Shown here: piece by piece, positions 2,397 to 62,576 of the stretch
How the letters are laid out: each line of letters starts with the position of its first letter
How positions within the stretch are numbered: position 1 is the stretch's first letter
Sequence record: PP496440.1
Direction: 5' to 3' (one strand)
Length of the DNA: 64,000 nucleotides
Position numbers and translations under genes: made by a program
The notes under the pieces: model-generated
Seen by the model: only the letters and a program-made list of their open reading frames with translations
Told to the model about the DNA's origin: nothing
Database searches by the model: none

Positions 2397-3926
2397 TTAA
2401 CTGATGCGGAACAGTCCGCCTTGAGCGAGTTCACGCACACGCGAGTTACCCTTCTGAACAGGTTCATTCAGGAAGGAAGCGGTGGTTACCTGGCGCAACG
2501 GGGTCTCGAGTTGGGTTTCCAACTGCGCAGTAGAAGCCTGACGGCCATTGCTGCGAGTCGAGGAACCTACCGGAGTAGTGGACGCGATGGTTTCCGCCAG
2601 ATCATTCAGGCTGCTCGGGTCACGGGCTGCCAGTGTCTGAGCCAGCGCGAGGACGTTTTGGTTATGTTCGTCTTCGGTTTCGGCCAAAGCGCTCTCAACC
2701 ATGGCTTGCGCGTTCTGTACACCAGCGGTGGTCAGATCGGCAATCAGGCGTTCCTTCACTTTGTGTGGGGTGTTGCGGAAGAACCCACGGGTCATACCAG
2801 CTGTCGCCAGCTGAAGGCCATGCAGCAGTCGTTCGGTCTGATCGCCAACGGTGTCGGCGACTTCGGCGGCAGCGACAGCCTTAGCCTTTTCTTGCACGAA
2901 TGCCATCGCCATCGCGGCAGGGGCCTTGAAGCTGTTACGCTGGAAGCCGTAGCTAGCCAGAGTTGCGTCCAAGCCGTCCTTGTTGAACGTCTGGGCGATT
3001 GCTTCCATGTAAGCTGGCTCGCCGAAGATATCGGCGTTGGCGGTTTCTGCGGTCTTGTGCAGGACAGCCACGGTCTGATCGTTGACGTTAGCCAAGATCT
3101 TGCCGTTCAGCGGGATGAATTCAGCAGTCGCATTTTCACTCAGGCCAACCGAGGACAGCGCTTCGAGAACGTCGATGTTCATATCTTCGGGCTCGTCACA
3201 TTGGTCGGGGTTCTGCGTGGACTGGATGACTTCGGCTTCTTCAACCGGTTCGTCGTCCGACTCCTCTTCTTCCTCGTCGTCAGCTTCGGCGGACGCAACC
3301 ACCGGCTTCTGCTTCGGCATGATGATCATCGGATTGTCCTCGGCGGAAGCTTCTTCCTCCAAGTCCTCGTCAGACTCATTCGATTCGTCGTCTTCCAGTT
3401 CTTCGTCGTCGGCGCTGGTGTCGTCATCGCTTAGATCCGAATCGTCTTCCGACTCTTCTTCATCATCGGCGCTGGCTTCTTCGGCGGGTTGATCGCCGTC
3501 CCATGCCCAATCGGCGTTCGCGTCTTCTTCGTCGGTAGCAGTGGTATCATCCTCTGCACCTGCGAGAGTTACGCTGGGGTTCAGTACCATCCCCGTACCG
3601 CATTCAACACAGCAGATCTCTACGTGGCCTTCTTTGTTCACCGGCATTTGCGCCAGCTCTTCATCGAACATCACGTTAGCCACGGTGCACTGACGGCACT
3701 GCGCGCTGGTAAGGCTATCTTCTTCCGACTGGTTAAAGACGGAAGCAGTGATTGCCTCAGCACGCTGTTTCATGGCTGGACTGCCGCAGTGACCGCAGAA
3801 CGGATCGCACCCCGCCAACGCTACCGTTTCCTCTTTGCAGTGACCGCACTGGTATGAAGCCAGTACAGCCTGCTTAAGGCTACGCATGGTTGGGGCGTGA
3901 GAAGCGATCATGGTGAGCTTCGGCAT
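2397..3926 (-). CDS. Prohead scaffold/core-like protein with N-terminal CxxC Zn motifs and a long acidic linker
   Basis: ATG at 3926 with GAGGAG RBS; four CxxC motifs (CGHC, CGHC, CRQC, CVEC), a D/E-rich tract and a helical C-terminus; upstream of the decoration and MCP genes. Confidence 0.55.
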   Translation of the reverse strand: MPKLTMIASHAPTMRSLKQAVLASYQCGHCKEETVALAGCDPFCGHCGSPAMKQRAEAITASVFNQSEEDSLTSAQCRQCTVANVMFDEELAQMPVNKEGHVEICCVECGTGMVLNPSVTLAGAEDDTTATDEEDANADWAWDGDQPAEEASADDEEESEDDSDLSDDDTSADDEELEDDESNESDEDLEEEASAEDNPMIIMPKQKPVVASAEADDEEEEESDDEPVEEAEVIQSTQNPDQCDEPEDMNIDVLEALSSVGLSENATAEFIPLNGKILANVNDQTVAVLHKTAETANADIFGEPAYMEAIAQTFNKDGLDATLASYGFQRNSFKAPAAMAMAFVQEKAKAVAAAEVADTVGDQTERLLHGLQLATAGMTRGFFRNTPHKVKERLIADLTTAGVQNAQAMVESALAETEDEHNQNVLALAQTLAARDPSSLNDLAETIASTTPVGSSTRSNGRQASTAQLETQLETPLRQVTTASFLNEPVQKGNSRVRELAQGGLFRIS

Positions 3927-4185
3927 GCGAAGTGCTCCTCTTGCTGTCAATGGGCTGCTACACACTATAAGCATGAGCAGATCTTCGAGCAGGCCACCTC
4001 GACGGCCCCTGCTACGGTAAACTCGGATTCACCCCTCCACGCGTATATAACGTTTTGGGAACAATTCAAATTACATACGACCAGAGTGCCATGGTGTCCA
4101 TACCTGCGTCAAAACGCCCGTTTGCCATCATGTCGGGATATGCCCAGCCATATGAGTGCTAAGTCATTGATTACCTTGACAATTT

Positions 4186-4210
4186 ATTAGGGGGTATGTG
4201 GCCCCCTAAT
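4186..4210. repeat. Perfect 9-bp inverted repeat in the divergent intergenic region
   Basis: ATTAGGGGG (4186-4194), 7-nt spacer, CCCCCTAAT (4202-4210). Confidence 0.7.
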
Positions 4211-4253
4211 TCATGGAAATTCAGGTATTTTGGCTATATCTGCGTCAAAGTGC

Positions 4254-4282
4254 TTGACAAACGCTGCCAGGCCCTGTATACT
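4254..4282 (+). promoter_or_regulatory. Sigma70-type early promoter
   Basis: TTGACA-17 nt-TATACT. Confidence 0.85.
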
Positions 4283-4345
4283 GCACGGGCGAGCTACTAT
4301 TCCAGCCCGCTACGTCCATGCCCACCGGGGCACGAAGGAACCAAC

Positions 4346-4822
4346 ATGAAGAGCATGATTCGCCGCAAAGATGGGTTTTACACGGAGTTGTTGGCCGGTG
4401 CTAAAGACCCTGTCGCCCTTTCCAAGACTGCATTCAACCGTGGACTGACCCGGATCGTTGCATCTATTACGAGCAGTGTTAAGCTGCGGTACGTAGTAGA
4501 TTCCGAAACCGGTGATGCGGAATACCGGGTGAGAGTGAAGTTTCAGAAAAGCCAGTTGACCCGCAAGGGTACTCCGGCTATCAAGGTGGGACGGGTACTG
4601 GTTCCTGTTGATCTCGACAGCATTGCAGTACATTGCACGTGTCAGGACTTTCGATTCACCTGGTACACCTATTTGAAGAACTCTGGGCACGCTGCCGGTT
4701 GGTTCAAGCAGGTGGAGTTGAAAGGATCTGGCCGCACTCGGGAAGCTGACCACGCAGGTTGCTGCAAACACGTCGCCGGTGTACTGGCAATGGTTGAGCA
4801 GAACGTTATCGTCAAGCTGTGA
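4346..4822 (+). CDS. SWIM zinc-finger protein
   Basis: ATG at 4346 with AAGGAA RBS; HCTCQDF...CCKHV matches the SWIM CxC-xn-CxH signature. Confidence 0.75.
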   Translation: MKSMIRRKDGFYTELLAGAKDPVALSKTAFNRGLTRIVASITSSVKLRYVVDSETGDAEYRVRVKFQKSQLTRKGTPAIKVGRVLVPVDLDSIAVHCTCQDFRFTWYTYLKNSGHAAGWFKQVELKGSGRTREADHAGCCKHVAGVLAMVEQNVIVKL

Positions 4823-4857
4823 CCCAGATGCAGTGAGTGTTACATGATAGAGAAAAT

Positions 4858-4892
4858 AAAACCCCACCGGTTCGCGCCGTGTGGGGTTTTTT
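4858..4892. terminator. Bidirectional intrinsic terminator
   Basis: AAAACCCCAC...GTGGGGTTTTTT between convergent genes. Confidence 0.85.
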
Positions 4893-4909
4893 ATGTCTGA
4901 AATTCAATC

Positions 4910-7696
4910 TTAGGTAAAGTCTTTCTGTGCCAGCACCAGTGGAACGCCGACAGTATCCAGTGCTATCTGTGTGAACTCCTTCAATTCTGATCTGGTAAGC
5001 TTCCGGCTCAGCATCACCCCATCGTGCTCTTGTGCTACCACGATGTCTTTGTGTCGCATGTTGAACTCTATCATCACCGCTTGCTCCATACCGCAGGTGA
5101 TGAAGTGCAGCAGCTTCGACTTCTCCTTTTGTGTCGTCCACCCATTCAGCATCTTGTCAGTATAGAAGAAGGCCACTGACCCCAGCGCATTGCGAACGCT
5201 CACTGCACTGGCGGTAGCATTGTCTGGATCAAGCCCAGCGTCCTTGATTGATCTGGACAGCGACTTGTACAGGAAGTAGTTATGCTTGGCGATCAGGTCT
5301 CGATTGACCGGCAGCTTGACGTGTTCAGTTACCTTGTAGTCCGGGTGTGCAAGGATCATGCTGGGCAGTGCCTGCATCGTCCTGATCACGGGGAAGATCA
5401 ACCGGTTGGTGGTGTAGATCAAAGCGATTGCCAGCTCCATCATCTTAATCTTGAGGGCTTGCACGTGGCTCTCATTCAACTCCAGTTCAATCGGTGCAAC
5501 CAGACCACGGATCAGTTTGTCTATGGTGTCGGGCACCACGGAAGATTTCAGGATGGACTCATGCGATGTCTTGAGGCTGGACCCGTACATGACAGAGAGG
5601 AACATCAGCTTACAGACTCCGTCGATAACCCGGATGAACTCCTTCTCCTTGCGCCACGTCTGGCCGAGCGTTTCCCCCGCGCTTTTCCATACCTGATGCA
5701 GCGCCAGTCGGTCATTCCATCTTGACTCACTTCCAGACCACTTCGGTGCTCCGTATACCCCAGCTCTCCATGGGTTCCGTACCATGACCAGCGCCGACTC
5801 CAGCAGGCCTTTGAATCCGGAGTCTTCCATCTCAGTCAGCACATGATCCGTCCACGTCTTGGATTCGTACATGCCGAAGATGGTCAACGCGCTGTCCACG
5901 TCCCGGTCCGTGAGAAACACCTTCCCGTATTCGTCTATCGTCTCGATCAGTTCCTTGCGATACCTCTTAACCAGCCCACCGATCAACATCGGGTGGCAAG
6001 ACTTGACATCGTAGTTGACGTATCCACTCTTGGTGAGGATCACCTGCTTGAGTTGGTTGGGCAGCGAACCAAAGCCCACCGGGGAGTTTATCCGGGGCGA
6101 GCGCAAGGTGGTGAAGTGATGTGCACGGTGCATGACGATCTGGTTGTGGCGGTCGCTGCTCCCTTGCTGGCAACCCAAGTTCTCCGGGTTGATCATGCGG
6201 GCCAGCGTGCGGAAGGCCCCGGAGGATATAGCGTCACCTGAGGTGTGGTGCATCCAGCTCAGCTCCGCAAGCAGGTCATTGACGGGTAGGCGTACGCTCT
6301 TGGTGGACAGCATGCGGATGTAGGCTTTTACGTTGACCGGGACAACGGGCCGGGTCGAAAGGTTTATGTTGTCGCTGATCTCCTTGTACGTCGGGTTGTT
6401 CACCACGCAAGACTGAACCATTGAAACCCGGCGTAACATCGTGCACGCCTTGATCGGCACGTTCTTATCATGGAACATGTACAGCTTGCCCGGCTGGCCG
6501 GTCAGGTTATCGTTCGCCACCAGAGACTCACCGTAGGGCAGCTGAGAACTGAATACCATAACAGCCTGCCCTCGTTCCGCGAACGCGTAGATCGCATTGG
6601 GCAGTACCCGGTTGCTACCCTTCAGATTGGTTAGCCAGCGGCCCAGCGGTTTCACGTCACGAGGCCGGCCCATCAAACGCCCATGTAGGTAGGCGTCAAC
6701 CTTATCCATGTACGAGTCAACGAACTGCGTGACCACGGGACCAGGTTCGAACGTGAATGTCTTGTGCTTCCAGTAGTCTGCCTCCGTGGTCACGGCCATC
6801 AGCCCCATGGTCTCCAGCACAGCGCGCACGGTGTCCCAGTGATACGTCATCTGACCTTTCTTCGATCCTTCGATGTTCCGCCAGTTGATCAGATTGTTGA
6901 ACCGTTTTTCACCTTGATGCGAGCCGAGCCCGTAGCCTTCCTTGACCTGATCCTTCTTGATCGCGAACTGGGTATCGTGGCTATGATCCAGATCAACGTG
7001 CAGGAACCGGGAAACAGACCGAGCGTGGTTCAGTTCCATGGGGAACGCCAGCTTGTTGGTCAGGTCCTTGGGGTTGAACGCAGGGTTCCATTGAAAGCCG
7101 TCCTTGGAGGTTCCCTTGTGCACGGCGGACACTAGATGCCGGGCCATTGAGTCGCGGGAGTCGAAGTGGCCTTTGTCGTTCACCTTATCCAGCAGCATGG
7201 GATATGCCACGACAAGGCGGGCGATCAGGAAGGCGAAGCAGTAGGCAGCAGACGGGCCGGGCGCACAGTTGCGCTCCGCCATCTTCTGGAGGAAGGTTTC
7301 GTACTGATCAAGTATGAAGTAGCCCAGACCGGGGGTGACGGCTACCGGCAGGCCAACGACGCGGCTGTCCAGCCAGCTCTTGCCACTGGGGTACAGGTTG
7401 TGCTTGGGGTTCAGCGAAGGTTCAACCACCATCATCCGCACATAGGGGACGTAGGACTGCACCCATTCAACGTTGGATTGATCTTTAGCTTCGGGGAAGT
7501 CACGGGTTACCTTTCCCACTTTGGCAATGAGATCAGTATTGAAGCGCCCTACATCCTTTACCTCAGGGGCCAGTGCGGGGTTTAGTCGAGCCGTAGCCTT
7601 GATGATGGGTACTTGGTCATACACGGGATACAAGTCTAGGGGCTTGGACAGTATGCCTGCATATTCCTTTTCCGAGAGTGGGGTGTAATCAGCCAT
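4910..7696 (-). CDS. Large protein with a C-terminal TV-Pol / family-A-related polymerase domain
   Basis: 928 aa; motif A-like NYDVKSCHP, motif B-like KLMFLSVMYG and motif C-like QEHDGVML in the correct order. Confidence 0.65.
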   Translation of the reverse strand: MADYTPLSEKEYAGILSKPLDLYPVYDQVPIIKATARLNPALAPEVKDVGRFNTDLIAKVGKVTRDFPEAKDQSNVEWVQSYVPYVRMMVVEPSLNPKHNLYPSGKSWLDSRVVGLPVAVTPGLGYFILDQYETFLQKMAERNCAPGPSAAYCFAFLIARLVVAYPMLLDKVNDKGHFDSRDSMARHLVSAVHKGTSKDGFQWNPAFNPKDLTNKLAFPMELNHARSVSRFLHVDLDHSHDTQFAIKKDQVKEGYGLGSHQGEKRFNNLINWRNIEGSKKGQMTYHWDTVRAVLETMGLMAVTTEADYWKHKTFTFEPGPVVTQFVDSYMDKVDAYLHGRLMGRPRDVKPLGRWLTNLKGSNRVLPNAIYAFAERGQAVMVFSSQLPYGESLVANDNLTGQPGKLYMFHDKNVPIKACTMLRRVSMVQSCVVNNPTYKEISDNINLSTRPVVPVNVKAYIRMLSTKSVRLPVNDLLAELSWMHHTSGDAISSGAFRTLARMINPENLGCQQGSSDRHNQIVMHRAHHFTTLRSPRINSPVGFGSLPNQLKQVILTKSGYVNYDVKSCHPMLIGGLVKRYRKELIETIDEYGKVFLTDRDVDSALTIFGMYESKTWTDHVLTEMEDSGFKGLLESALVMVRNPWRAGVYGAPKWSGSESRWNDRLALHQVWKSAGETLGQTWRKEKEFIRVIDGVCKLMFLSVMYGSSLKTSHESILKSSVVPDTIDKLIRGLVAPIELELNESHVQALKIKMMELAIALIYTTNRLIFPVIRTMQALPSMILAHPDYKVTEHVKLPVNRDLIAKHNYFLYKSLSRSIKDAGLDPDNATASAVSVRNALGSVAFFYTDKMLNGWTTQKEKSKLLHFITCGMEQAVMIEFNMRHKDIVVAQEHDGVMLSRKLTRSELKEFTQIALDTVGVPLVLAQKDFT

Positions 7697-7744
7697 TGGA
7701 TAGCTCGCGTATTACCGGAGTGAATGGAATTGAGCGTTATCAGC

Positions 7745-7753
7745 CCATTTACC
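7745..7753 (-). promoter_or_regulatory. GTAAAT-type phage promoter motif
   Basis: GGTAAATGG about 50 nt upstream of the 928-aa gene; the same motif precedes many other genes. Confidence 0.55.
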
Positions 7754-8193
7754 AGACTATATACAGAGTATCTTATGGGGGTTAAAAAGGACCATCTTGC
7801 AATTATTTGGGTCATTAATTCCCTTCCAGACCATAAACCTCTATCTGTGGATACGGGGGTAGTTAGCCCTAGATACATCCCTATTACCTGTGTATATTGC
7901 CCATGTAGACTCTATTCCCCTATCGGGAAGTATAACCTCGAAAAAGGTTCCTAGCTTGCATGGGCTGGCCCACCCACCCCCGTGGCCCACCCGACCGCCC
8001 GGTTAAGGCCATACCTAGGGATTCCTTTCTCCCAGAGGGACCCCCAGCCGCCCATCCTTCCCCTGCTCCTCCCTTTCCTTCATCATCTACACCCACCCAG
8101 CTATTGACTTACCATCTAGTGATCCTCCTTCCTCCAGCTTCTACATAGGCAGTTAGCTTCCCCATGCCTCTAAGCTCCTCCGCTTCATCATGC

Positions 8194-8258
8194 ACTTATG
8201 CTCTGTAGTACTGATTCCCCACATGCCCGTGACTTATGCTCTGGTGTCAGTATTCCCA
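8194..8258. repeat. Imperfect direct repeat with a 38-bp period
   Basis: ACTTATGCTCTG at 8194-8205 and 8232-8243, each followed by ATTCCC. Confidence 0.6.
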
Positions 8259-8469
8259 GCCTCCCAGGTGAAAGGGTGTCCATGCGCTGGGGAGTTGTCC
8301 GGGGAATAGCGCCCGTGGATAGGGCTTCCAGGCGTGCGATACGGGGAGTTTTCCGGGTATGGATGAGTCAGTATGGCGGGGAATGGGGATCGAAGCGCCT
8401 GCGAGCTTGTAGGAGCCCGTGGTTATTGGCTGGATACACGGGGCGGGGCGTGGGTTTCCTGCGGAGGTG

Positions 8470-8503
8470 AAAAAGCCCGCACGGCTTGGGACCGATACGG
8501 GCT
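8470..8503 (-). terminator. Intrinsic terminator ending the early minus-strand operon
   Basis: AGCCCG...CGGGCT stem followed by TTTT on the minus strand. Confidence 0.7.
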
Positions 8504-8509
8504 CTGGTA

Positions 8510-8653
8510 TTACTTGACGTACTCGGGATGCCTCACTTGTGGGTGACACACGAAGTCAACGGCCTGCACTGGTAAGATGAGTGGCACCGTGCCCTTGTAC
8601 TTGCGGATCAGCTGGGTGTATATCTCACCGTCCCACTTGCCCAGCTCGTTCAC
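8510..8653 (-). CDS. Possible small hypothetical protein (47 aa)
   Basis: GTG start with a weak RBS; fills the gap before the terminator; not in the ORF track. Confidence 0.3.
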   Translation of the reverse strand: MNELGKWDGEIYTQLIRKYKGTVPLILPVQAVDFVCHPQVRHPEYVK

Positions 8654-8704
8654 CTGACTAACTCTCTCATCTATAGAGAGCCTGATTGCCGCTGACCAGC
8701 AGTC

Positions 8705-8800
8705 TTACTTGGCAATGGGTCCGTCGAACGTCTGGATCGGCGTGTAGCCGTTGTGCAACGCGGTGTAGACCGCGAGCATCAGGAAGTAGCCCGTGTTCAT
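8705..8800 (-). CDS. Small hypothetical protein (31 aa)
   Basis: MNTGYFLMLAVYTALHNGYTPIQTFDGPIAK; its ATG overlaps the stop of the upstream gene (ATGA coupling). Confidence 0.5.
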   Translation of the reverse strand: MNTGYFLMLAVYTALHNGYTPIQTFDGPIAK

Positions 8801-9294
8801 TTGAGTATCTCGATAGGTGGCTTCTCAGCATCGAGACTCGGGTGGGGCTTCGGTGCTGCCGTCTGTGTGCTGCCCCTCCGCTGGCTCAGGATGATCTCGT
8901 ACAGCTCGCCGCCCGGTTTCAACGTGTCGGGGTTCTCAGTGTGCAGCACCGCGATCAGATCCATGATGTCCGTGTTGTGTCCCAGTTCCGCCGACGGGAT
9001 CATCTGGAATTCCTGACTCACGCCGGGGATCGGATCTTGCGGTCGGTACAGCGCGACCACCCTGCCTTTGCCCGGCTCGGCGCCCAGCTTGCTACCGTCT
9101 CGTCCCACCCACATCTCACGGGAGCCCGGCACACTAGCTGGCACGTATTCGATAGAACCTTCAGGGTAATGCGCGGAGAACGTGGCAACGAACCACCGCG
9201 AACTGCCCTTGTAGCAGCGGAACGGTTTGGTCTCTCTGGCGTGACGGGTCAGTGGGTTGTTCATAGGCGTAGAGTGTTCGACGATCAGTGACAT
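8797..9294 (-). CDS. Hypothetical protein
   Basis: 165-aa ORF with GAGGAA RBS and the conserved leader. Confidence 0.75.
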   Translation of the reverse strand: MSLIVEHSTPMNNPLTRHARETKPFRCYKGSSRWFVATFSAHYPEGSIEYVPASVPGSREMWVGRDGSKLGAEPGKGRVVALYRPQDPIPGVSQEFQMIPSAELGHNTDIMDLIAVLHTENPDTLKPGGELYEIILSQRRGSTQTAAPKPHPSLDAEKPPIEILK

Positions 9295-9328
9295 GGTGTA
9301 TTCCTCTTCGGGGTAGTGGGGGCTGCGG

Positions 9329-9655
9329 TTAGTCGTTGAATTCTTTGGGATCGAAGCCGTGCCGTTCGCACCAATCTCGGCGCTCCACGCTCAAGTCGCG
9401 GCCCTGATCTTTTTGCAATGCGCCCCGGCGGACCCACTCGACCAGGTCCCCCATACGCTCCCAGCGCTGGAAGCCTTGGTAGAAGTCCTCCAGATCCGCG
9501 GTGTTGTCCTTGATCAGTTGCGCGATGTGGACGGAAGGAGATGTCAGCGTCATCAGCTCGGCGTGGTCTTTCGCGAACTGGGCCAGCTTGTCGCCCACCC
9601 ACTTGTCAGCTTTGATCTGCAATTCGGTTGGGCCAAGTTCTGCTTCGTCGATCAT
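9329..9655 (-). CDS. Hypothetical protein
   Basis: 108-aa ORF, GAGGAA RBS, operon context. Confidence 0.75.
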   Translation of the reverse strand: MIDEAELGPTELQIKADKWVGDKLAQFAKDHAELMTLTSPSVHIAQLIKDNTADLEDFYQGFQRWERMGDLVEWVRRGALQKDQGRDLSVERRDWCERHGFDPKEFND

Positions 9656-11727: not shown

Positions 11728-12046
11728 TACCGCCTCCGGATACTGACTCGATGGCAATTATCTCGGCACCTATGAGCAGGCTCTTCAGCCATTCCTCACC
11801 ACGCTCGTCTCCGTCTTCTACCCGAGTGTCTCCCATCATAATGAATGGGCAGTCGTTGTGCACCTCGAGCCGGTCGTAGACTATACCCACGGCAGAATCG
11901 ATGACATCCCAGCCAGTACAATTGCCGCCGATCTTCACTTCCATGACAGCGCGGAGCAACCCACATGCGAAGGTAAGCTGTACGGTCTGGAGGCAATTGC
12001 CCATAGTGTAGAACTTACCCATCTGTTCGTGATCATAGTTCAACAT
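11708..12046 (-). CDS. Hypothetical protein
   Basis: Start MLNYDH at 12046 overlaps the upstream stop; GAGGA RBS. Confidence 0.7.
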   Translation of the reverse strand: MLNYDHEQMGKFYTMGNCLQTVQLTFACGLLRAVMEVKIGGNCTGWDVIDSAVGIVYDRLEVHNDCPFIMMGDTRVEDGDERGEEWLKSLLIGAEIIAIESVSGGGNVNQGS

Positions 12047-12870
12047 TAGTCTGTCCTCTTGATGTTGCCGGGTAGGGTGTAGGACCACGGCTTGACGTAA
12101 TCTGCCGGGCGGGTGTAGCCTATCAGGTCGGTACCTTCGTACGGGCCGTGCTTCCACGGATCGGTAATCTCTGCGCGTTCAAACCCGATGGACTCGTACA
12201 GCTTGATCGCACCTTCGTTGTCCGGATCCACGTTGAGATGGTGTGGCAGTCCTTGGGTCAGTTCCCAAGACAGCAGGAAGTCCAGCATGCCGCTGGCGAC
12301 ACCGCGACGGCGGTAGTCTGGATCAACACTGATCTCCTTGACGAAGCACGCATCCACCTTCTCGCTGTCCTCGTCTTCCTTGAACATCACAACGTCCATC
12401 AGTCCGACGACCTTGTTGTGCGCGGTAACTGATACCCGTATCTCTTCCTGATCCGGTATATCACCGCTCCAGCCATTCCATCTGGCCATGGTCACGGTGT
12501 ACAGATTGTGTTGCCCGTCGTGCTTGGGACTGTGCACCTGATGCAGTGCCCGTGCATTCTTCAACTCCATCTTGTCGCCGGGCTTGATGACCGGGAATTC
12601 CAGATGCTTGATTTCCTTTTCAAGCATGATACCAATCTCGGAGTCTTTCGCTTTCTTGTCTTTGATGGTGGCTCGGTACACTGTGTCTGTGTCCGTGTTG
12701 TAAACATCCACCTTATCCGTCATCACCGTAATAGACGGCACAGCGGACCAGATGTACTCTTTGCAATGAGCTTTATCCGGGAATGCGAAGCCAACGGACT
12801 CGCCGTCTACAATGACCAGCCACGGGCAATGGCCGGGATGCGGAAACCGAAGGATCTTTTGTGTGGGCAT
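12046..12870 (-). CDS. GNAT (RimI-like) acetyltransferase with an N-terminal extension
   Basis: ISVDPDYRRRGVAS (acetyl-CoA R/QxxGxG/A motif) and LNVDPDNEGAIKLYESIGF. Confidence 0.85.
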   Translation of the reverse strand: MPTQKILRFPHPGHCPWLVIVDGESVGFAFPDKAHCKEYIWSAVPSITVMTDKVDVYNTDTDTVYRATIKDKKAKDSEIGIMLEKEIKHLEFPVIKPGDKMELKNARALHQVHSPKHDGQHNLYTVTMARWNGWSGDIPDQEEIRVSVTAHNKVVGLMDVVMFKEDEDSEKVDACFVKEISVDPDYRRRGVASGMLDFLLSWELTQGLPHHLNVDPDNEGAIKLYESIGFERAEITDPWKHGPYEGTDLIGYTRPADYVKPWSYTLPGNIKRTD

Positions 12871-51735: not shown

Positions 51736-54700
51736 TTGAAGAGGGTAACCTGTGTGTTAATATCCAGAGCGTCATTAGAGAAGTTTGATTTCGGAAGTCT
51801 GTTTGATGATCACGTCAACAACGTCGGCAAACCGTACAAGGTACAGTCAGTAAGATCCACCGATTGGTTCCAGTCCAAGGAACGTCTGCTGGTGATCATG
51901 GGTCGTCCCAACTACCGGGATGCCAAAGACGAAGTGCGCTGCATGATGGGCGCAGATGAAACCCGCATGGTGTTCGATAACCTGCTGGACTTGGCTGCGT
52001 CCAACGCTGAGGTTTATGCGAAGAAGGCAGGAATCAAGCTACGGTCCCGTAACAAGCACGCGATCATGGTCACCAACTTCCAGATTGCTGACCTGAGTTC
52101 AGCGTCGGAGGAAACAGAGTCCATCGCCAACCACGCGGCAGCTAACCGCGTCTCCATGCTGATCCATGTGACCAAACCCACCAAGGTACTGATCGTCGGG
52201 CTGTACGCCGAGTCGTACCTGATGGAACGCTCGGGCATCGAGTACCCGGCCAAGAAGCGCGGCAACCCGCATCAGGTTGAGTTCAAGGTTGAGTTCAAGC
52301 CCAACGAGAAAGAACTCAAGCGCATGCAGTCACTGGAAAAGATGCGCTCTAAGGCTTTGGTACGGGAACTGGAGAGCAACGAGTATCACCCATGGGTAAA
52401 CTTCTTCCTTGAGGAAGTGGCGCACGAAGGTGCCAAGCTGGCTGACTTCGCCAAGAAGGGTGGCACGTACTCGCTGAGCAACACGGTCCAGACGTTCTCC
52501 ACTATCGACTATGACCGGGCGTTCACCAGTGGTTCCGGCGAGAGCGACCTCGATGATGACGCGGTGGTAGAAGCCAACCTGCTCGGGTACGTGAGCCGGA
52601 ACATCGCTAACTGCCTGCTGGGCTGCAATCCATTCAGCCTGCGTCATCTGTTCAGTGAGAAGCAACCGTCCGGGCCAAAGGGTAAGCCCACGATTCAGTG
52701 CCACTATGTCGATACGCTGAAGAAGTTCGACACCCTGTGGGATAAAGTGATGGAAGCGGACCTGGTGTCCCTCGACGTTGAGACGACCGGCTTCTACCCG
52801 CACACTAACCGGTTGCTGTCACTTCAGGTAGCCACTCGTAAGGAGGAAGGTTTCTTCGTTCCGCTCTATCACAAGGACACCCCGTTCACCAAGAAGGAAC
52901 TGGAGCACATCCGTCTGCGCGTCAAAGCGTTGCTGGAACTCAAGGTTACCTATCACAAGAACCAGCGCCGCAAGCGCATGATGCTCGGCCAGAACTTCGG
53001 CTTCGACAAGAAGTGGCTGATGCACTGGTGCGACGTACGCTATCTGTACTGGCCGGTGTGGGACACTATCGCCGGTGAGTTCTGCCTCGACGACAACCTC
53101 AAGGGTCTGGTGGGTAAAGCCCTCGGCTACAAGTACACCCCGTTCTCGTTGGACTCCATTGTGGCGTCGTACGAGAACTACCACTATTTGGAATCGGAGT
53201 TCGGTAAGGAAGATCGGACGACCATTGAACATGTCAAGTTCGGTCCAGGTGAACCAGTGGTAACCTATGGTTGCATGGACGTTGTCTTCCCCATCGCCGC
53301 CATGGAACAGCAACTGAACCGTGCAGAGTGTGAGCACTGGCCGACCGGTAACTACCGGGACACTCTGTTCAACTTCATGTTGGCTCAGATGTCGAACATG
53401 ATCAAGGTGCAGTCGGGTATGTCGCACCGAGGCATCATGATGGACCAAGGTTACATGGAGTTCCAGCTGAGCGAAGAGGGTGTGTTCGCCAAGGACGTGG
53501 AACGCCTGACCCGCGAGTTGTACGCATCCAAGAATGTGAAGAAAGCGTCCGAGATGCTACGGGGCAAGAAGGGTATCCCCCAAGGTTCCCTATTCGGCAA
53601 TGCGGGCGGCGGTGGTGACGCTGCAGGTTTCAACCATGCCAAGCAGGAACACTTGGAGATACTGTTCTTCGACGTGCTCAAGCTGGCACCGGTCAACGTC
53701 AAGAAGGAGACCGATAAGCGCTCGCTGGACGATGACTTCAAGAAGGCGTACAAAGCCGTACCAGAGGTTGCGTGCTGGGCGCAGATGGGTAAGATGCAGC
53801 GGTTGCTCGATACGTTCATTCGCGCCATCTACAACCACATGAACAACGACCCAGACTATTCGGTGCACAACAGGCTCCATCCCGGCTACGGGTTCAAGGA
53901 GGTTGTGACCGGTCGATCCAACAGTAGCAAGCCGTCGCTCCAGCAGATCCCGGTGCACAGTGCCGAGGCCAAGTACGTCAAGCGGCAGTTCGTGGCCCCG
54001 ATGTGGACCTTGTTCGATGACGCTGACTATAGCTCTCACGAGGTTCGCTGCGCGGGTATCACGGCGTTCGACGAAGCTTCATGCTCGGGCTTCCGCAAGA
54101 TTCACAACATCGTACTGGATCACAGGCTGTATCCATCGAAGGACAACAAGATCGTCCTGCTCACGGCGGGCGACAGCCACAAGCAGAACTACTCCCGCTT
54201 CACCGGTCTGGATATCAAGGAATGGATCACCTTCGACTTGACCGAGGAAGGCAAGAAGAAGGCAAAGGCACTGCGACAAATCGCCAAGACCATCGTGTTC
54301 GGTGCGATCTATGGTAAGTCGGCACCCTCGCTGGCTGCAGAGCTGGGTATCAGCGTCGAGGAAGCAGAAGAGCTGCTGTTCAACTTCTTCAAGGAGTTCG
54401 CGGATCTCAAGGACTGGCTGGAGTGGACCAAAGACTATTCCAACAAGCACTTGTACACCTTCGGCCCACACGGTCGCAAGCGTCGTCTGTTCGGCTACAT
54501 CACCGGTATCAAGCGTACTCAGTCTGCGATGGAACGTCGTGCGCAGAACTCGCCAATTCAAGGCTTCGCATCGGACGTTATGTTCGACGCCGCCGAGATG
54601 TATGCGCAAAAGCAGCATGAGGTGTACGCACTGATCGAAGCCAACCGTAGCCTGCGCAAGATGCTGAGCAAGGAGCTGGAGATTGTCAATCAGTTCCCTA

Positions 54701-55161
54701 CTGGCGCCAACGTTCTGGTTCACGACTCCAGCAAGTCAGAGTCGCCGTTCAACTTCCTGCTGATGAACATGCACATCAAAGAGTGGTGTATGACCACGGG
54801 CGTCCAGAACTATCTTGAGTCCAACTTTGATATGCAGTTCTTGACCCCGTTCGGTATCGACTTCGACATCGGCGCATCGTGGGCAGACATGGAAGGCTGG
54901 GACTTCAACCCGACCACCCTGATCGGACCTCAGCCCACGGACAAAGATGGTAAGCCGGGTATGGGCATCATTGAGACGGCACTGGAGAACAGCCAGAAGA
55001 TTCACAACTACTCGTTCAACACCGACAAGGTAGCGCAAGGTATGTTCACCAGCTACCACATGCTGCGAGACGAGCTGAAGCTGGATGAACTCTTCCCGTT
55101 GAACATGAAGTATTGCGTGGACAAGGACTGGCAGGTGCCTACTCCGAAACTTCCAAAGTGA
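51736..55161 (+). CDS. polA: Family A DNA polymerase with 3'-5' exonuclease and an N-terminal accessory domain
   Basis: Exonuclease motifs LDVETTG, QNFGFD and YGCMD; polymerase motifs DADYSSHEVR, R.IAKTIVFGAIYG and VHDS. The exact start (TTG 51736 or GTG 51754) is uncertain. Confidence 0.95.
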   Translation: MKRVTCVLISRASLEKFDFGSLFDDHVNNVGKPYKVQSVRSTDWFQSKERLLVIMGRPNYRDAKDEVRCMMGADETRMVFDNLLDLAASNAEVYAKKAGIKLRSRNKHAIMVTNFQIADLSSASEETESIANHAAANRVSMLIHVTKPTKVLIVGLYAESYLMERSGIEYPAKKRGNPHQVEFKVEFKPNEKELKRMQSLEKMRSKALVRELESNEYHPWVNFFLEEVAHEGAKLADFAKKGGTYSLSNTVQTFSTIDYDRAFTSGSGESDLDDDAVVEANLLGYVSRNIANCLLGCNPFSLRHLFSEKQPSGPKGKPTIQCHYVDTLKKFDTLWDKVMEADLVSLDVETTGFYPHTNRLLSLQVATRKEEGFFVPLYHKDTPFTKKELEHIRLRVKALLELKVTYHKNQRRKRMMLGQNFGFDKKWLMHWCDVRYLYWPVWDTIAGEFCLDDNLKGLVGKALGYKYTPFSLDSIVASYENYHYLESEFGKEDRTTIEHVKFGPGEPVVTYGCMDVVFPIAAMEQQLNRAECEHWPTGNYRDTLFNFMLAQMSNMIKVQSGMSHRGIMMDQGYMEFQLSEEGVFAKDVERLTRELYASKNVKKASEMLRGKKGIPQGSLFGNAGGGGDAAGFNHAKQEHLEILFFDVLKLAPVNVKKETDKRSLDDDFKKAYKAVPEVACWAQMGKMQRLLDTFIRAIYNHMNNDPDYSVHNRLHPGYGFKEVVTGRSNSSKPSLQQIPVHSAEAKYVKRQFVAPMWTLFDDADYSSHEVRCAGITAFDEASCSGFRKIHNIVLDHRLYPSKDNKIVLLTAGDSHKQNYSRFTGLDIKEWITFDLTEEGKKKAKALRQIAKTIVFGAIYGKSAPSLAAELGISVEEAEELLFNFFKEFADLKDWLEWTKDYSNKHLYTFGPHGRKRRLFGYITGIKRTQSAMERRAQNSPIQGFASDVMFDAAEMYAQKQHEVYALIEANRSLRKMLSKELEIVNQFPTGANVLVHDSSKSESPFNFLLMNMHIKEWCMTTGVQNYLESNFDMQFLTPFGIDFDIGASWADMEGWDFNPTTLIGPQPTDKDGKPGMGIIETALENSQKIHNYSFNTDKVAQGMFTSYHMLRDELKLDELFPLNMKYCVDKDWQVPTPKLPK

Positions 55162-61928: not shown

Positions 61929-62576
61929 ATGGCTGTCAATAGCAGTATGATCAAACTCCCCAAGATGGGGAGTGTCACGTTCAAGAAGATGCAAGCGGTT
62001 AACGTGCCGATCCATCGTCTGGCCCAGTCCCACATTCAGTTTAACCTGCGAGAGAACTTGCAGGAAGATGTGTTCGTTGAACGAAACAAGGCCAAGGAAG
62101 TAAAAGACATCGTTCGACACACTGCTGCGTCTCAACTCCGGGCGTGGCAGTTGTTGATGCAAGAACCATTTGGTGAGCCGTACAGCATGTGCGTGTCCAC
62201 CTACGAGTCCGATTTCCTGCCCAAGATGGTAGCCGCCACACTGGTTGCTGCTGCCTTCGATCAGGGCGCCACCGTCAATCAGGTGGCTTGGCACACGATC
62301 ACCGGAGACGCGGTTGACTACATGCTGGTAGATCATCATGCACGGAAGAAAGACCTGAAGCTGATCGTGCTTGCCAACCTGCCAACGTCCTACGACCACA
62401 CGACCCGGATGGACAGCTCTTTGCTGAAGTATGAGAAGGTGCGGGACATCATCGAGGTGTTCCCCAATGCGGCGGTGTGCGTGGTGTCAACAGGCACCAG
62501 CCCGTCGGACCTGTTCCATAAACTTCAACTTCCTCTGGACATCGCCATCCGCCTGATGGATAAGAGACAACTATGA
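61929..62576 (+). CDS. Possible degenerate DnaC/IstB-like helicase loader
   Basis: P-loop-like alpha/beta order without an intact Walker A; overlaps the start of the DnaB-like gene. Confidence 0.35.
   Translation: MAVNSSMIKLPKMGSVTFKKMQAVNVPIHRLAQSHIQFNLRENLQEDVFVERNKAKEVKDIVRHTAASQLRAWQLLMQEPFGEPYSMCVSTYESDFLPKMVAATLVAAAFDQGATVNQVAWHTITGDAVDYMLVDHHARKKDLKLIVLANLPTSYDHTTRMDSSLLKYEKVRDIIEVFPNAAVCVVSTGTSPSDLFHKLQLPLDIAIRLMDKRQL

Follow-up and report, generated by a model that had tools for sequence, protein, structure and literature searches.

Phage KoPa-5 of Pseudomonas putida probably encodes a highly divergent TV-Pol-family polymerase in addition to its family A DNA polymerase

The 64,000-nucleotide (nt) stretch of DNA analysed here, referred to as the window, belongs to vB_PpuM-KoPa-5 (KoPa-5), one of nine 'G3' jumbo myophages of Pseudomonas putida from Estonia (bioRxiv 10.1101/2024.03.26.586772). 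Positions are those of the window; adding 137,088 gives the coordinate in the 201,088-bp record PP496440.1. Positions 4910-7696 of the minus strand form the gene KoPa5_00165, a single ATG-to-stop frame of 928 amino acids plus stop annotated as 'hypothetical protein'; all features within the gene described below lie on the same strand. Judged from profile comparisons, its product is very probably a TV-Pol-family polymerase, albeit a very divergent one. TV-Pols are minimal relatives of the family A polymerases that lack proofreading and are found in transposons, plasmids and viruses (PMC2579912). The protein can be divided into an N-terminal region, residues 1-445 (6362-7696), which is without a detectable relative or domain and differs from the TV-PolN domain of the relatives, and a TV-Pol-like polymerase region, residues 446-928 (4913-6361), which is delimited by a single-sequence hhalign alignment beginning at residue 453, by HMMER matches and by shared invariant columns.

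The motif strings quoted in the original prediction are all found in the protein and in the order quoted: PRINSPVGFGSLP at residues 534-546, NYDVKSCHP at 561-569, KLMFLSVMYG at 696-705 and EHDG at 890-893. The segment preceding motif A, R532-S-P-R535...L545-P546 (6059-6103), is the counterpart of the family A sequence TGRlsS..PNLQnIP, with R535 located in an invariant arginine column. Motif A itself, NYDVKSCHP (5990-6016), contains D563, the predicted first catalytic aspartate, and H568, which occupies the column of the steric-gate glutamate of PolA; this histidine is invariant, and its presence in that column means that sugar selectivity cannot be predicted. It is followed by an insertion, residues 570-694 (5615-5989), recognized from the D-to-K spacing. 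Motif B, CKLMFLSVMYG (695-705; 5582-5614), contributes K696, Y704 and G705, all in invariant columns of both PolA and the TV-Pol-like proteins, and has no arginine at K-4, four positions before the lysine. The residues C868-G-M-E871 (5084-5095), located 23 residues before the motif C aspartate, correspond to lQGvE of the relatives and to piQGsAaD of family A, while motif C, QEHDG (889-893; 5018-5032), carries D892, the predicted second catalytic aspartate. Close to the C-terminus, VPLVL (918-922; 4931-4945) resembles the final palm strand 'VPL.V' of Pol I enzymes, a visual likeness in the alignment only.

The order of these motifs exceeds chance. The pattern K-x7-YG...HD[EGSAN] arises in 1% of 20,000 shuffles of the KoPa5_00165 protein and, among 139 phage open reading frames (ORFs) of at least 300 amino acids, is found only in T7 RNA polymerase (RNAP), T7 DNA polymerase (DNAP), the PolA of KoPa-5, KoPa5_00165 and the counterpart of the latter in phage Peetri. 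A fuller collinear motif pattern, composed after the sequence had been seen, occurs in 1 of 20,000 shuffles. The Peetri allele is 1,010 amino acids long and is 37% identical to KoPa5_00165 by MAFFT, or 32% by tblastn.

The connection to the TV-Pol family was made through cyanophage Ma-LMM01, which has been named as a TV-Pol carrier (Iyer, Abhiman and Aravind 2008, PMC2579912). A profile of residues 500-928 run over the 162-kb Ma-LMM01 genome gave one match, MAP_030 (E 3.2e-4), a 506-residue protein annotated as 'hypothetical', the gene of which adjoins two IS605-type transposase genes. BLASTP to MAP_030 gave E 2e-4 for the KoPa-5 protein and 4e-5 for that of Peetri, the aligned segment ending with NYDVVKCH in the cyanophage protein and NYDVKSCH in KoPa5_00165. 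Distant relatives of MAP_030 are present on small plasmids, namely the TV-Pol-like Polaromonas proteins WP_181374945 and WP_181377809 and one ORF of a Calothrix plasmid; the copies on Polaromonas pH8NP1 and Calothrix plasmid6 lie near resolvase or recombinase genes, the relative on Polaromonas pW9NP1 adjoins repA, and 21 further relatives were found on metagenome contigs. Resolvase, recombinase, transposase and RepA-type contexts match those of the subset of TV-Pols with an N-terminal helical domain (PMC2579912). We call this reference set TV-Pol via Ma-LMM01 (named in PMC2579912), the gene contexts and the link to PolA given below, and not via the sequence list of that paper. Other candidates in the cyanophage were discarded: its PF00476 match turned out to be the phage's own split PolA, and a 'putative DNA primase' beside a resolvase turned out to be a DnaG-type primase.

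A hidden Markov model (HMM) of 22 TV-Pol-like sequences, built without KoPa5_00165, was searched against 2,498 sequences consisting of KoPa5_00165, the Peetri allele, 496 phage ORFs and 2,000 shuffles. It recovered the Peetri allele with E 7e-11 and KoPa5_00165 with E 2.9e-9, the next best sequence of the test set having E 2.3; the HMMER matches span residues 523-579 and 842-908. Comparison of KoPa5_00165 with the 22-sequence family by hhalign gave a probability of 92% and P 5.5e-7 (0.24 for a reversed decoy). With a four-sequence family the value was P 8.7e-6, and none of the other ORFs among the 32 in the window with at least 300 amino acids fell below P 0.07. The TV-Pol-like family in turn aligns collinearly with a 105-sequence PolA profile (hhalign P 5.9e-5), pairing SGRLY..LQ with TGRlsS.PNLQ, DYDIeNCH with aDYSq.EvR, K..LlAviYG with aK.IvFG.iYG, LLQGvE with PIQG.AsD and QHDG with VHDs. 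By these comparisons, KoPa5_00165 is linked to family A only transitively, through the TV-Pol-like family. The original proposal of a second, highly divergent TV-Pol-like polymerase beside Pol A is supported by these statistics, and the signature originally given for the family (D..S/N.HP, K...YG, HDG) appears in the TV-Pol-like sequences as (N/D)YDxxxCH, K..L..(I/M)YG and QHDG.

When the two alleles are aligned with the 22 relatives without guidance, R535, K550, D563, C567, H568, K696, Y704, G705, G869, E871, H891, D892 and G893 are located in conserved columns of the family. Every invariant residue of the TV-Pol-like family is retained (R535, D563, C567-H568, K696, Y704-G705, G869/E871 and H891-D892-G893), and the predicted active-site residue set is intact. 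The two aspartates, D563 and D892, are in invariant columns and are both kept in the 37%-identical Peetri allele. R535 and D563 are 28 residues apart (27-29 in the family), and the spacing of 23 from the QG position to the motif C aspartate is the same as in the family. The D-to-K spacing is 133 in KoPa5_00165 versus 49 in the relatives, with 196 in Peetri, and the spacing from the lysine to QG is 173 versus about 90 in the family, pointing to two insertions of about 80 amino acids, one between motifs A and B and one between motif B and QG. A 'VPVN' segment near residue 452 is common to KoPa5_00165 and its relatives, which hints that the homology begins there; residues 446-928, approximately, are on this alignment evidence homologous to the TV-Pol-like proteins. 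Residues 1-445 did not align significantly with the N-terminal part of the TV-Pol-like proteins (hhalign P 0.73), and by the same sequence comparisons this region and the two insertions of about 80 residues are new features.

TV-Pols have been described as having a beta-hairpin with an invariant arginine before motif A, two palm aspartates, an RxxxK motif in the fingers and a two-helix coiled-coil thumb; typical members have 400-600 amino acids, occur alone or with TV-PolN or a D5-like helicase, and are encoded beside a resolvase, integrase or transposase (PMC2579912). KoPa5_00165 shares with them the arginine segment before motif A, the (N/D)YDxxxCH, K..L..(I/M)YG, QG.E and QHDG motifs and the spacings of 28 and 23, and, like its relatives, it has no exonuclease domain and no arginine at K-4. 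It differs from them in its length (928 versus about 500 residues), in its unrelated N-terminal 445 residues, in the two insertions and in its setting, a lytic 201-kb phage with a full replisome and with no resolvase, integrase, transposase or D5-like helicase alongside. With the family A enzymes (Pol I, T7 DNAP and the PolA of KoPa-5) it has the motif order in common, and the Asp, Lys, Tyr-Gly and His-Asp residues align; however, there is no PF00476 match and no exonuclease domain, the steric-gate glutamate is replaced by histidine, the K-4 arginine is absent and the glutamate of motif C is replaced by glycine. The T7-like RNA polymerases are of similar length, contain the K-x7-YG and HD motifs and also have a large N-terminal domain, but no similarity to them is detectable, and the short Arg-to-Asp spacing and the signature residues of KoPa5_00165 are those of the TV-Pols.

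To our knowledge, CcPol-MP is the only TV-Pol member tested biochemically, and we know of none tested from the N-terminally extended branch. CcPol was assigned to the TV-Pol group by Iyer et al. (PMC2579912), and CcPol-MP, from SCCmec, can polymerize DNA without a primer (Bebel et al. 2020, PMC7581432); CcPol alone only extends primers, priming requiring its partner MP, a small OB-fold protein (PMC7581432, PMC10061031). KoPa5_00165 is likened by description only to this family-A-type enzyme, which has no proofreading and occupies the place of a primase. Unlike KoPa5_00165, CcPol is a bare polymerase domain encoded together with a helicase and MP, neither of which is annotated beside KoPa5_00165.

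Standard methods do not recognize the protein. Queries with the full-length protein, each of its halves, the allele from Peetri and a 9-sequence profile gave no meaningful match in Pfam, PHROGs, NCBIfam or PDB sequences; a sub-threshold YycE-like match and chance calpain matches were the sole library output and were dismissed as not meaningful. In a word search, and in an HMMER scan run in full over 1.84 billion proteins, the only sequences recovered were those of the protein's own cluster, from 8 phages with 97.5-100% identity, and one Peetri protein, and an alignment of two sequences used as query found no further relatives in IMG/VR, JGI metagenomes or GTDB genomes. Over the whole KoPa-5 record PF00476 matched only the main PolA, with no match to KoPa5_00165 at E up to 10. 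A 105-sequence PolA domain profile gave P 0.06-0.1 with hhalign and E 0.1 with hmmsearch --max, and T7 DNAP and the KoPa-5 PolA did not score significantly with hhalign or hmmsearch. For the T7-like RNA polymerases, no match to PF00940 or PF14700 was obtained, hhalign against a T7 RNAP alignment gave P 0.63, and a KoPa5_00165 profile run over the T7 genome found no match. The near-global hhalign path and the unguided MAFFT alignment do place K696, Y704, G705, H891 and D892 in invariant PolA columns. PF00476 clusters were among the named clusters in an ESM Atlas feature search, with scores of 0.77 and 0.86, and were taken as a lead only.

Comparison with phage Peetri shows how the gene evolves. 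Proteins encoded by neighbouring genes are 73-98% identical between the two phages, while KoPa5_00165 is 32% identical (tblastn). Similarity at the DNA level ends at 8133, 437 nt upstream of the ATG, and restarts at 5109, near residue 863; between these breaks, at 5110-8133, no DNA similarity is present, and the flanks are 89-92% identical. This stretch comprises residues 1 to about 862 and 437 nt of upstream non-coding DNA, indicating that the gene and part of its leader were exchanged as a cassette. No flanking repeats bounding the cassette were found. Between KoPa-5 and SKa-4, the ratio of non-synonymous to synonymous substitution rates (dN/dS) is 0.049 in both halves of the gene, with a dS of 0.25, and each of the nine known phages of the genus carries an intact copy of the gene at the same locus. 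Purifying selection on the protein is strong, and the divergence of the protein from the Peetri allele does not reflect fast evolution.

Upstream of the gene is a non-coding stretch of about 770 nt (7697-8469, minus). It contains a sigma-70-like site (7785-7756) and, on the coding strand, a tract rich in purine and G (8220-8021), together with two G4-like runs at 8073-8041 and 8000-7977 (minus). Before it, a GC hairpin followed by a T-run (8470-8503, minus) ends the upstream operon; this hairpin was read from the sequence and was not listed by a consensus scan. The hairpin and T-run, the long non-coding stretch and the convergent orientation of the downstream gene indicate that KoPa5_00165 is its own, monocistronic transcription unit. 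On its coding strand the leader is C-rich at 8520-8321 (39-42% C) and becomes purine/G-rich further on (69-73% purine at 8220-8021, with 45% G at 8120-8021). The Peetri leader makes the same change and is likewise purine-rich, though partly unalignable. The leader may serve as an R-loop, as an origin-like element or as a long 5' untranslated region. Rfam searched over 4000-9500 gave nothing above chance. A 26-nt direct repeat (8194-8219 and 8232-8257, 77% identical, 38 nt apart) falls where the leader is conserved in both KoPa-5 and Peetri.

The main family A DNA polymerase of KoPa-5, with an exonuclease region, is encoded at 51898-55161 on the plus strand (PF00476 E 3e-38, and a weak 3'-5' exonuclease match). 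Elsewhere the genome encodes a DnaB-like helicase, a Toprim primase, a clamp-loader homologue, SSB, a UvsX-like recombinase, a topoisomerase II, a ligase, an RNase H and a sigma factor. Given this complete replication set, KoPa5_00165 is best seen as an extra polymerase and not as a substitute for an absent primase or RNA polymerase. The observation that no DnaG-type primase lies in the window agrees with the annotation of the window, but it does not extend to the whole genome, where the Toprim primase KoPa5_00110 is encoded outside the window; an argument from a missing primase therefore fails.

Taken as a whole, the results are best explained, we think with reasonable likelihood, by a catalytically intact TV-Pol-family nucleic-acid polymerase that may serve in starting DNA synthesis. 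KoPa5_00165 would polymerize DNA on a template without proofreading, and may act as a primase-polymerase or an initiator that starts or restarts DNA synthesis at a particular site, with the 445-residue N-terminal region perhaps supplying recognition of the site or of a partner. The priming or initiating role itself is proposed only tentatively, by analogy with CcPol-MP (PMC7581432) and from the position of the plasmid relatives in replication slots. A more speculative idea, which we regard as rather unlikely, is that the gene and the DNA upstream of it form a self-contained initiation cassette, in which the N-terminal domain would recognize a site in the strand-asymmetric, G-rich leader immediately upstream and the TV-Pol core would begin the first DNA chain at this site, with enzyme and site passing jointly from phage to phage. 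If this were so, each phage lineage would have a private replication start beside a T4-like replisome.

Several observations weigh against the assignment to the TV-Pols or against a priming role. The profile result depends on the depth of the alignment: a 3-sequence family alignment gives an hhalign probability of just 11% (P 0.0028), and a 3-sequence TV-Pol profile finds no match in the KoPa-5 record. The confidently aligned blocks total about 120 residues, and direct comparisons with PolA profiles, T7 DNAP and T7 RNAP are not significant by hhalign and hmmsearch. The arginine of the RxxxK finger motif is absent, its position being taken by D692 here and by glutamine in Peetri; it is equally absent from 22 of the 22 relatives, making it a trait of the whole branch and not of KoPa5_00165 alone. 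Between KoPa-5 and Peetri, the DNA encoding motif C and the final 66 residues is 89% identical, so that finding motif C conserved in both alleles does not count as independent evidence. AlphaFold2 models, made with PolA sequences kept out of the folding alignment because seeding would force the fold, have a predicted local distance difference test (pLDDT) score of 33.4 for the full-length protein and 47.5 for residues 500-928, both too low to judge the palm fold or the proximity of the aspartates. With these low-confidence models as query, the best Foldseek match in the PDB had E 0.46 and VIA-align gave Z below 8, retrieving only generic helical bundles, which were taken as evidence neither for nor against. 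As regards priming, the genome already contains the Toprim-domain primase KoPa5_00110 (record positions 86293-87411) and a DnaB-like helicase, and the annotation shows neither a D5-like helicase or resolvase nor a small partner gene next to KoPa5_00165.

The evidence for a TV-Pol core would also fit a specialized DNA polymerase that extends primers, for repair, gap filling, translesion synthesis or the copying of DNA with 7-deazaguanine-type modifications, and that does no priming of its own. CcPol by itself behaves in this way, needing MP to prime, and no partner gene is annotated near KoPa5_00165; the large set of base-modification genes in the same window and the invariant histidine in the steric-gate column are also compatible with such a function. 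Nothing ties KoPa5_00165 to the modification operon, however, from which it is separated as its own unit more than 10 kb away and on the opposite strand. The TV-Pol relatives occupy replication slots of small plasmids and elements, and the exchange of the gene together with upstream non-coding DNA would be left unexplained, making a pure primer-extending enzyme an unlikely account. Still less probable is a polymerase-derived protein that has ceased to polymerize and has become structural, regulatory or DNA-binding, or a useless passenger of mobile-element origin. The absent finger arginine, the two insertions breaking up the fingers, the typical occurrence of TV-Pols in selfish elements (the Ma-LMM01 copy lies beside transposases) and the behaviour of the gene as a swappable cassette could all be read in this direction. 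They must be set against the retention of both catalytic aspartates, of the motif B lysine and tyrosine and of all the other invariant residues in two alleles that are only 37% identical, a dN/dS of 0.049 over the whole length and the intact gene in all nine phages; furthermore, no transposase was found beside the gene, nor any resolvase or flanking repeats.

Another reading, in which the protein would transcribe part of the phage genome as a DNA-dependent RNA polymerase with a single subunit, like those of T7 or N4, has its attraction in the dimensions of the protein. We take T7 RNAP to have 883 amino acids and catalytic aspartates at positions 537 and 812, which the 928 residues and D563 and D892 of KoPa5_00165 resemble, and the missing glutamate at the steric-gate column and the large N-terminal domain would suit such an enzyme. 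The Arg-to-Asp spacing, which in T7 RNAP is presumably about 110, is 28 in KoPa5_00165, as fits DNA polymerases and TV-Pols, and the signature residues are those of TV-Pols. Together with the negative searches (PF00940 and PF14700, hhalign P 0.63, the T7 genome) and the fact that KoPa-5 encodes a sigma factor for the host enzyme, this makes an RNA polymerase very improbable. That KoPa5_00165 is no polymerase at all and resembles one in its motifs by chance is disfavoured and, in our view, scarcely credible. No curated library, PDB sequence or structure search recognizes KoPa5_00165, and PolA profiles score at chance level, but a profile built without it detects the two alleles with E 3e-9 and 7e-11 while decoys remain above E 2, the spacings match exactly and all invariant columns are shared.

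If KoPa5_00165 is the intact TV-Pol-family polymerase that we favour, it provides an opportunity to study this group. In 2008 the TV-Pols were put forward as close to the smallest version of the whole Pol I / T7 RNA polymerase superfamily, and as a third type of primase (PMC2579912). The KoPa-5 protein would be an intact and strongly constrained version, present in easily grown lytic phages that plate on the laboratory strain P. putida KT2440, in which deletion, swapping with the Peetri allele, origin mapping and the biochemistry of a TV-Pol should be straightforward. Such polymerases go entirely unnoticed by standard annotation, Pfam, PHROGs and even AlphaFold2, which suggests that other 'hypothetical' giants in jumbo phages may conceal further replication enzymes.

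Some further observations concern the relatives and the other replication genes. WP_181374945 of pH8NP1 is annotated as a 'Clp protease N-terminal domain-containing protein', and neither it nor MAP_030 is recognized by Pfam, from which it appears that public annotation overlooks the TV-Pol family. The unannotated record of a 142-kb Desulfovibrio (Nitratidesulfovibrio) phage (PV062637.1 / OR395405.1) contains, at 63588-64442 (minus), a TV-Pol-like sequence that matches the Polaromonas protein (26% identity, E 2e-9). In phage Yoloswag, neither a KoPa5_00165 profile nor the 3-sequence TV-Pol profile found a match, although an empty result carries no weight with this search tool. Outside the genus, the main PolA is closest to those of the Vibrio jumbo phages vB_VcorM_GR7B and GR11A, at 49% identity, with no close relative found in IMG/VR. 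KoPa5_00239 (61929-62576, plus; 215 amino acids), located between a helicase and the DnaB-like helicase and named 'DNA polymerase', matches PHROG 20094 'DNA polymerase' with E 5e-20 and has no Pfam match.

Among the neighbours of KoPa5_00165, the 'ATPase' KoPa5_00163 (2397-3926, minus) was considered as a D5-like helicase partner and rejected, having no support from Pfam or the PDB; it matches only PHROG 20988 and heads the capsid gene block, and its name looks weak. The convergent neighbour KoPa5_00164 (4346-4822, plus; 158 amino acids) is 96% conserved in Peetri and matches no family, apart from a sub-threshold SWIM zinc-finger match at its C-terminus (E 0.013). KoPa5_00166, 168, 170 and 173 are without a Peetri counterpart in the region compared, and the acetyltransferase KoPa5_00175 (12046-12870, minus; 274 amino acids) aligns to a shorter Peetri gene over 94 residues only, forming a second mosaic spot in the gene row.

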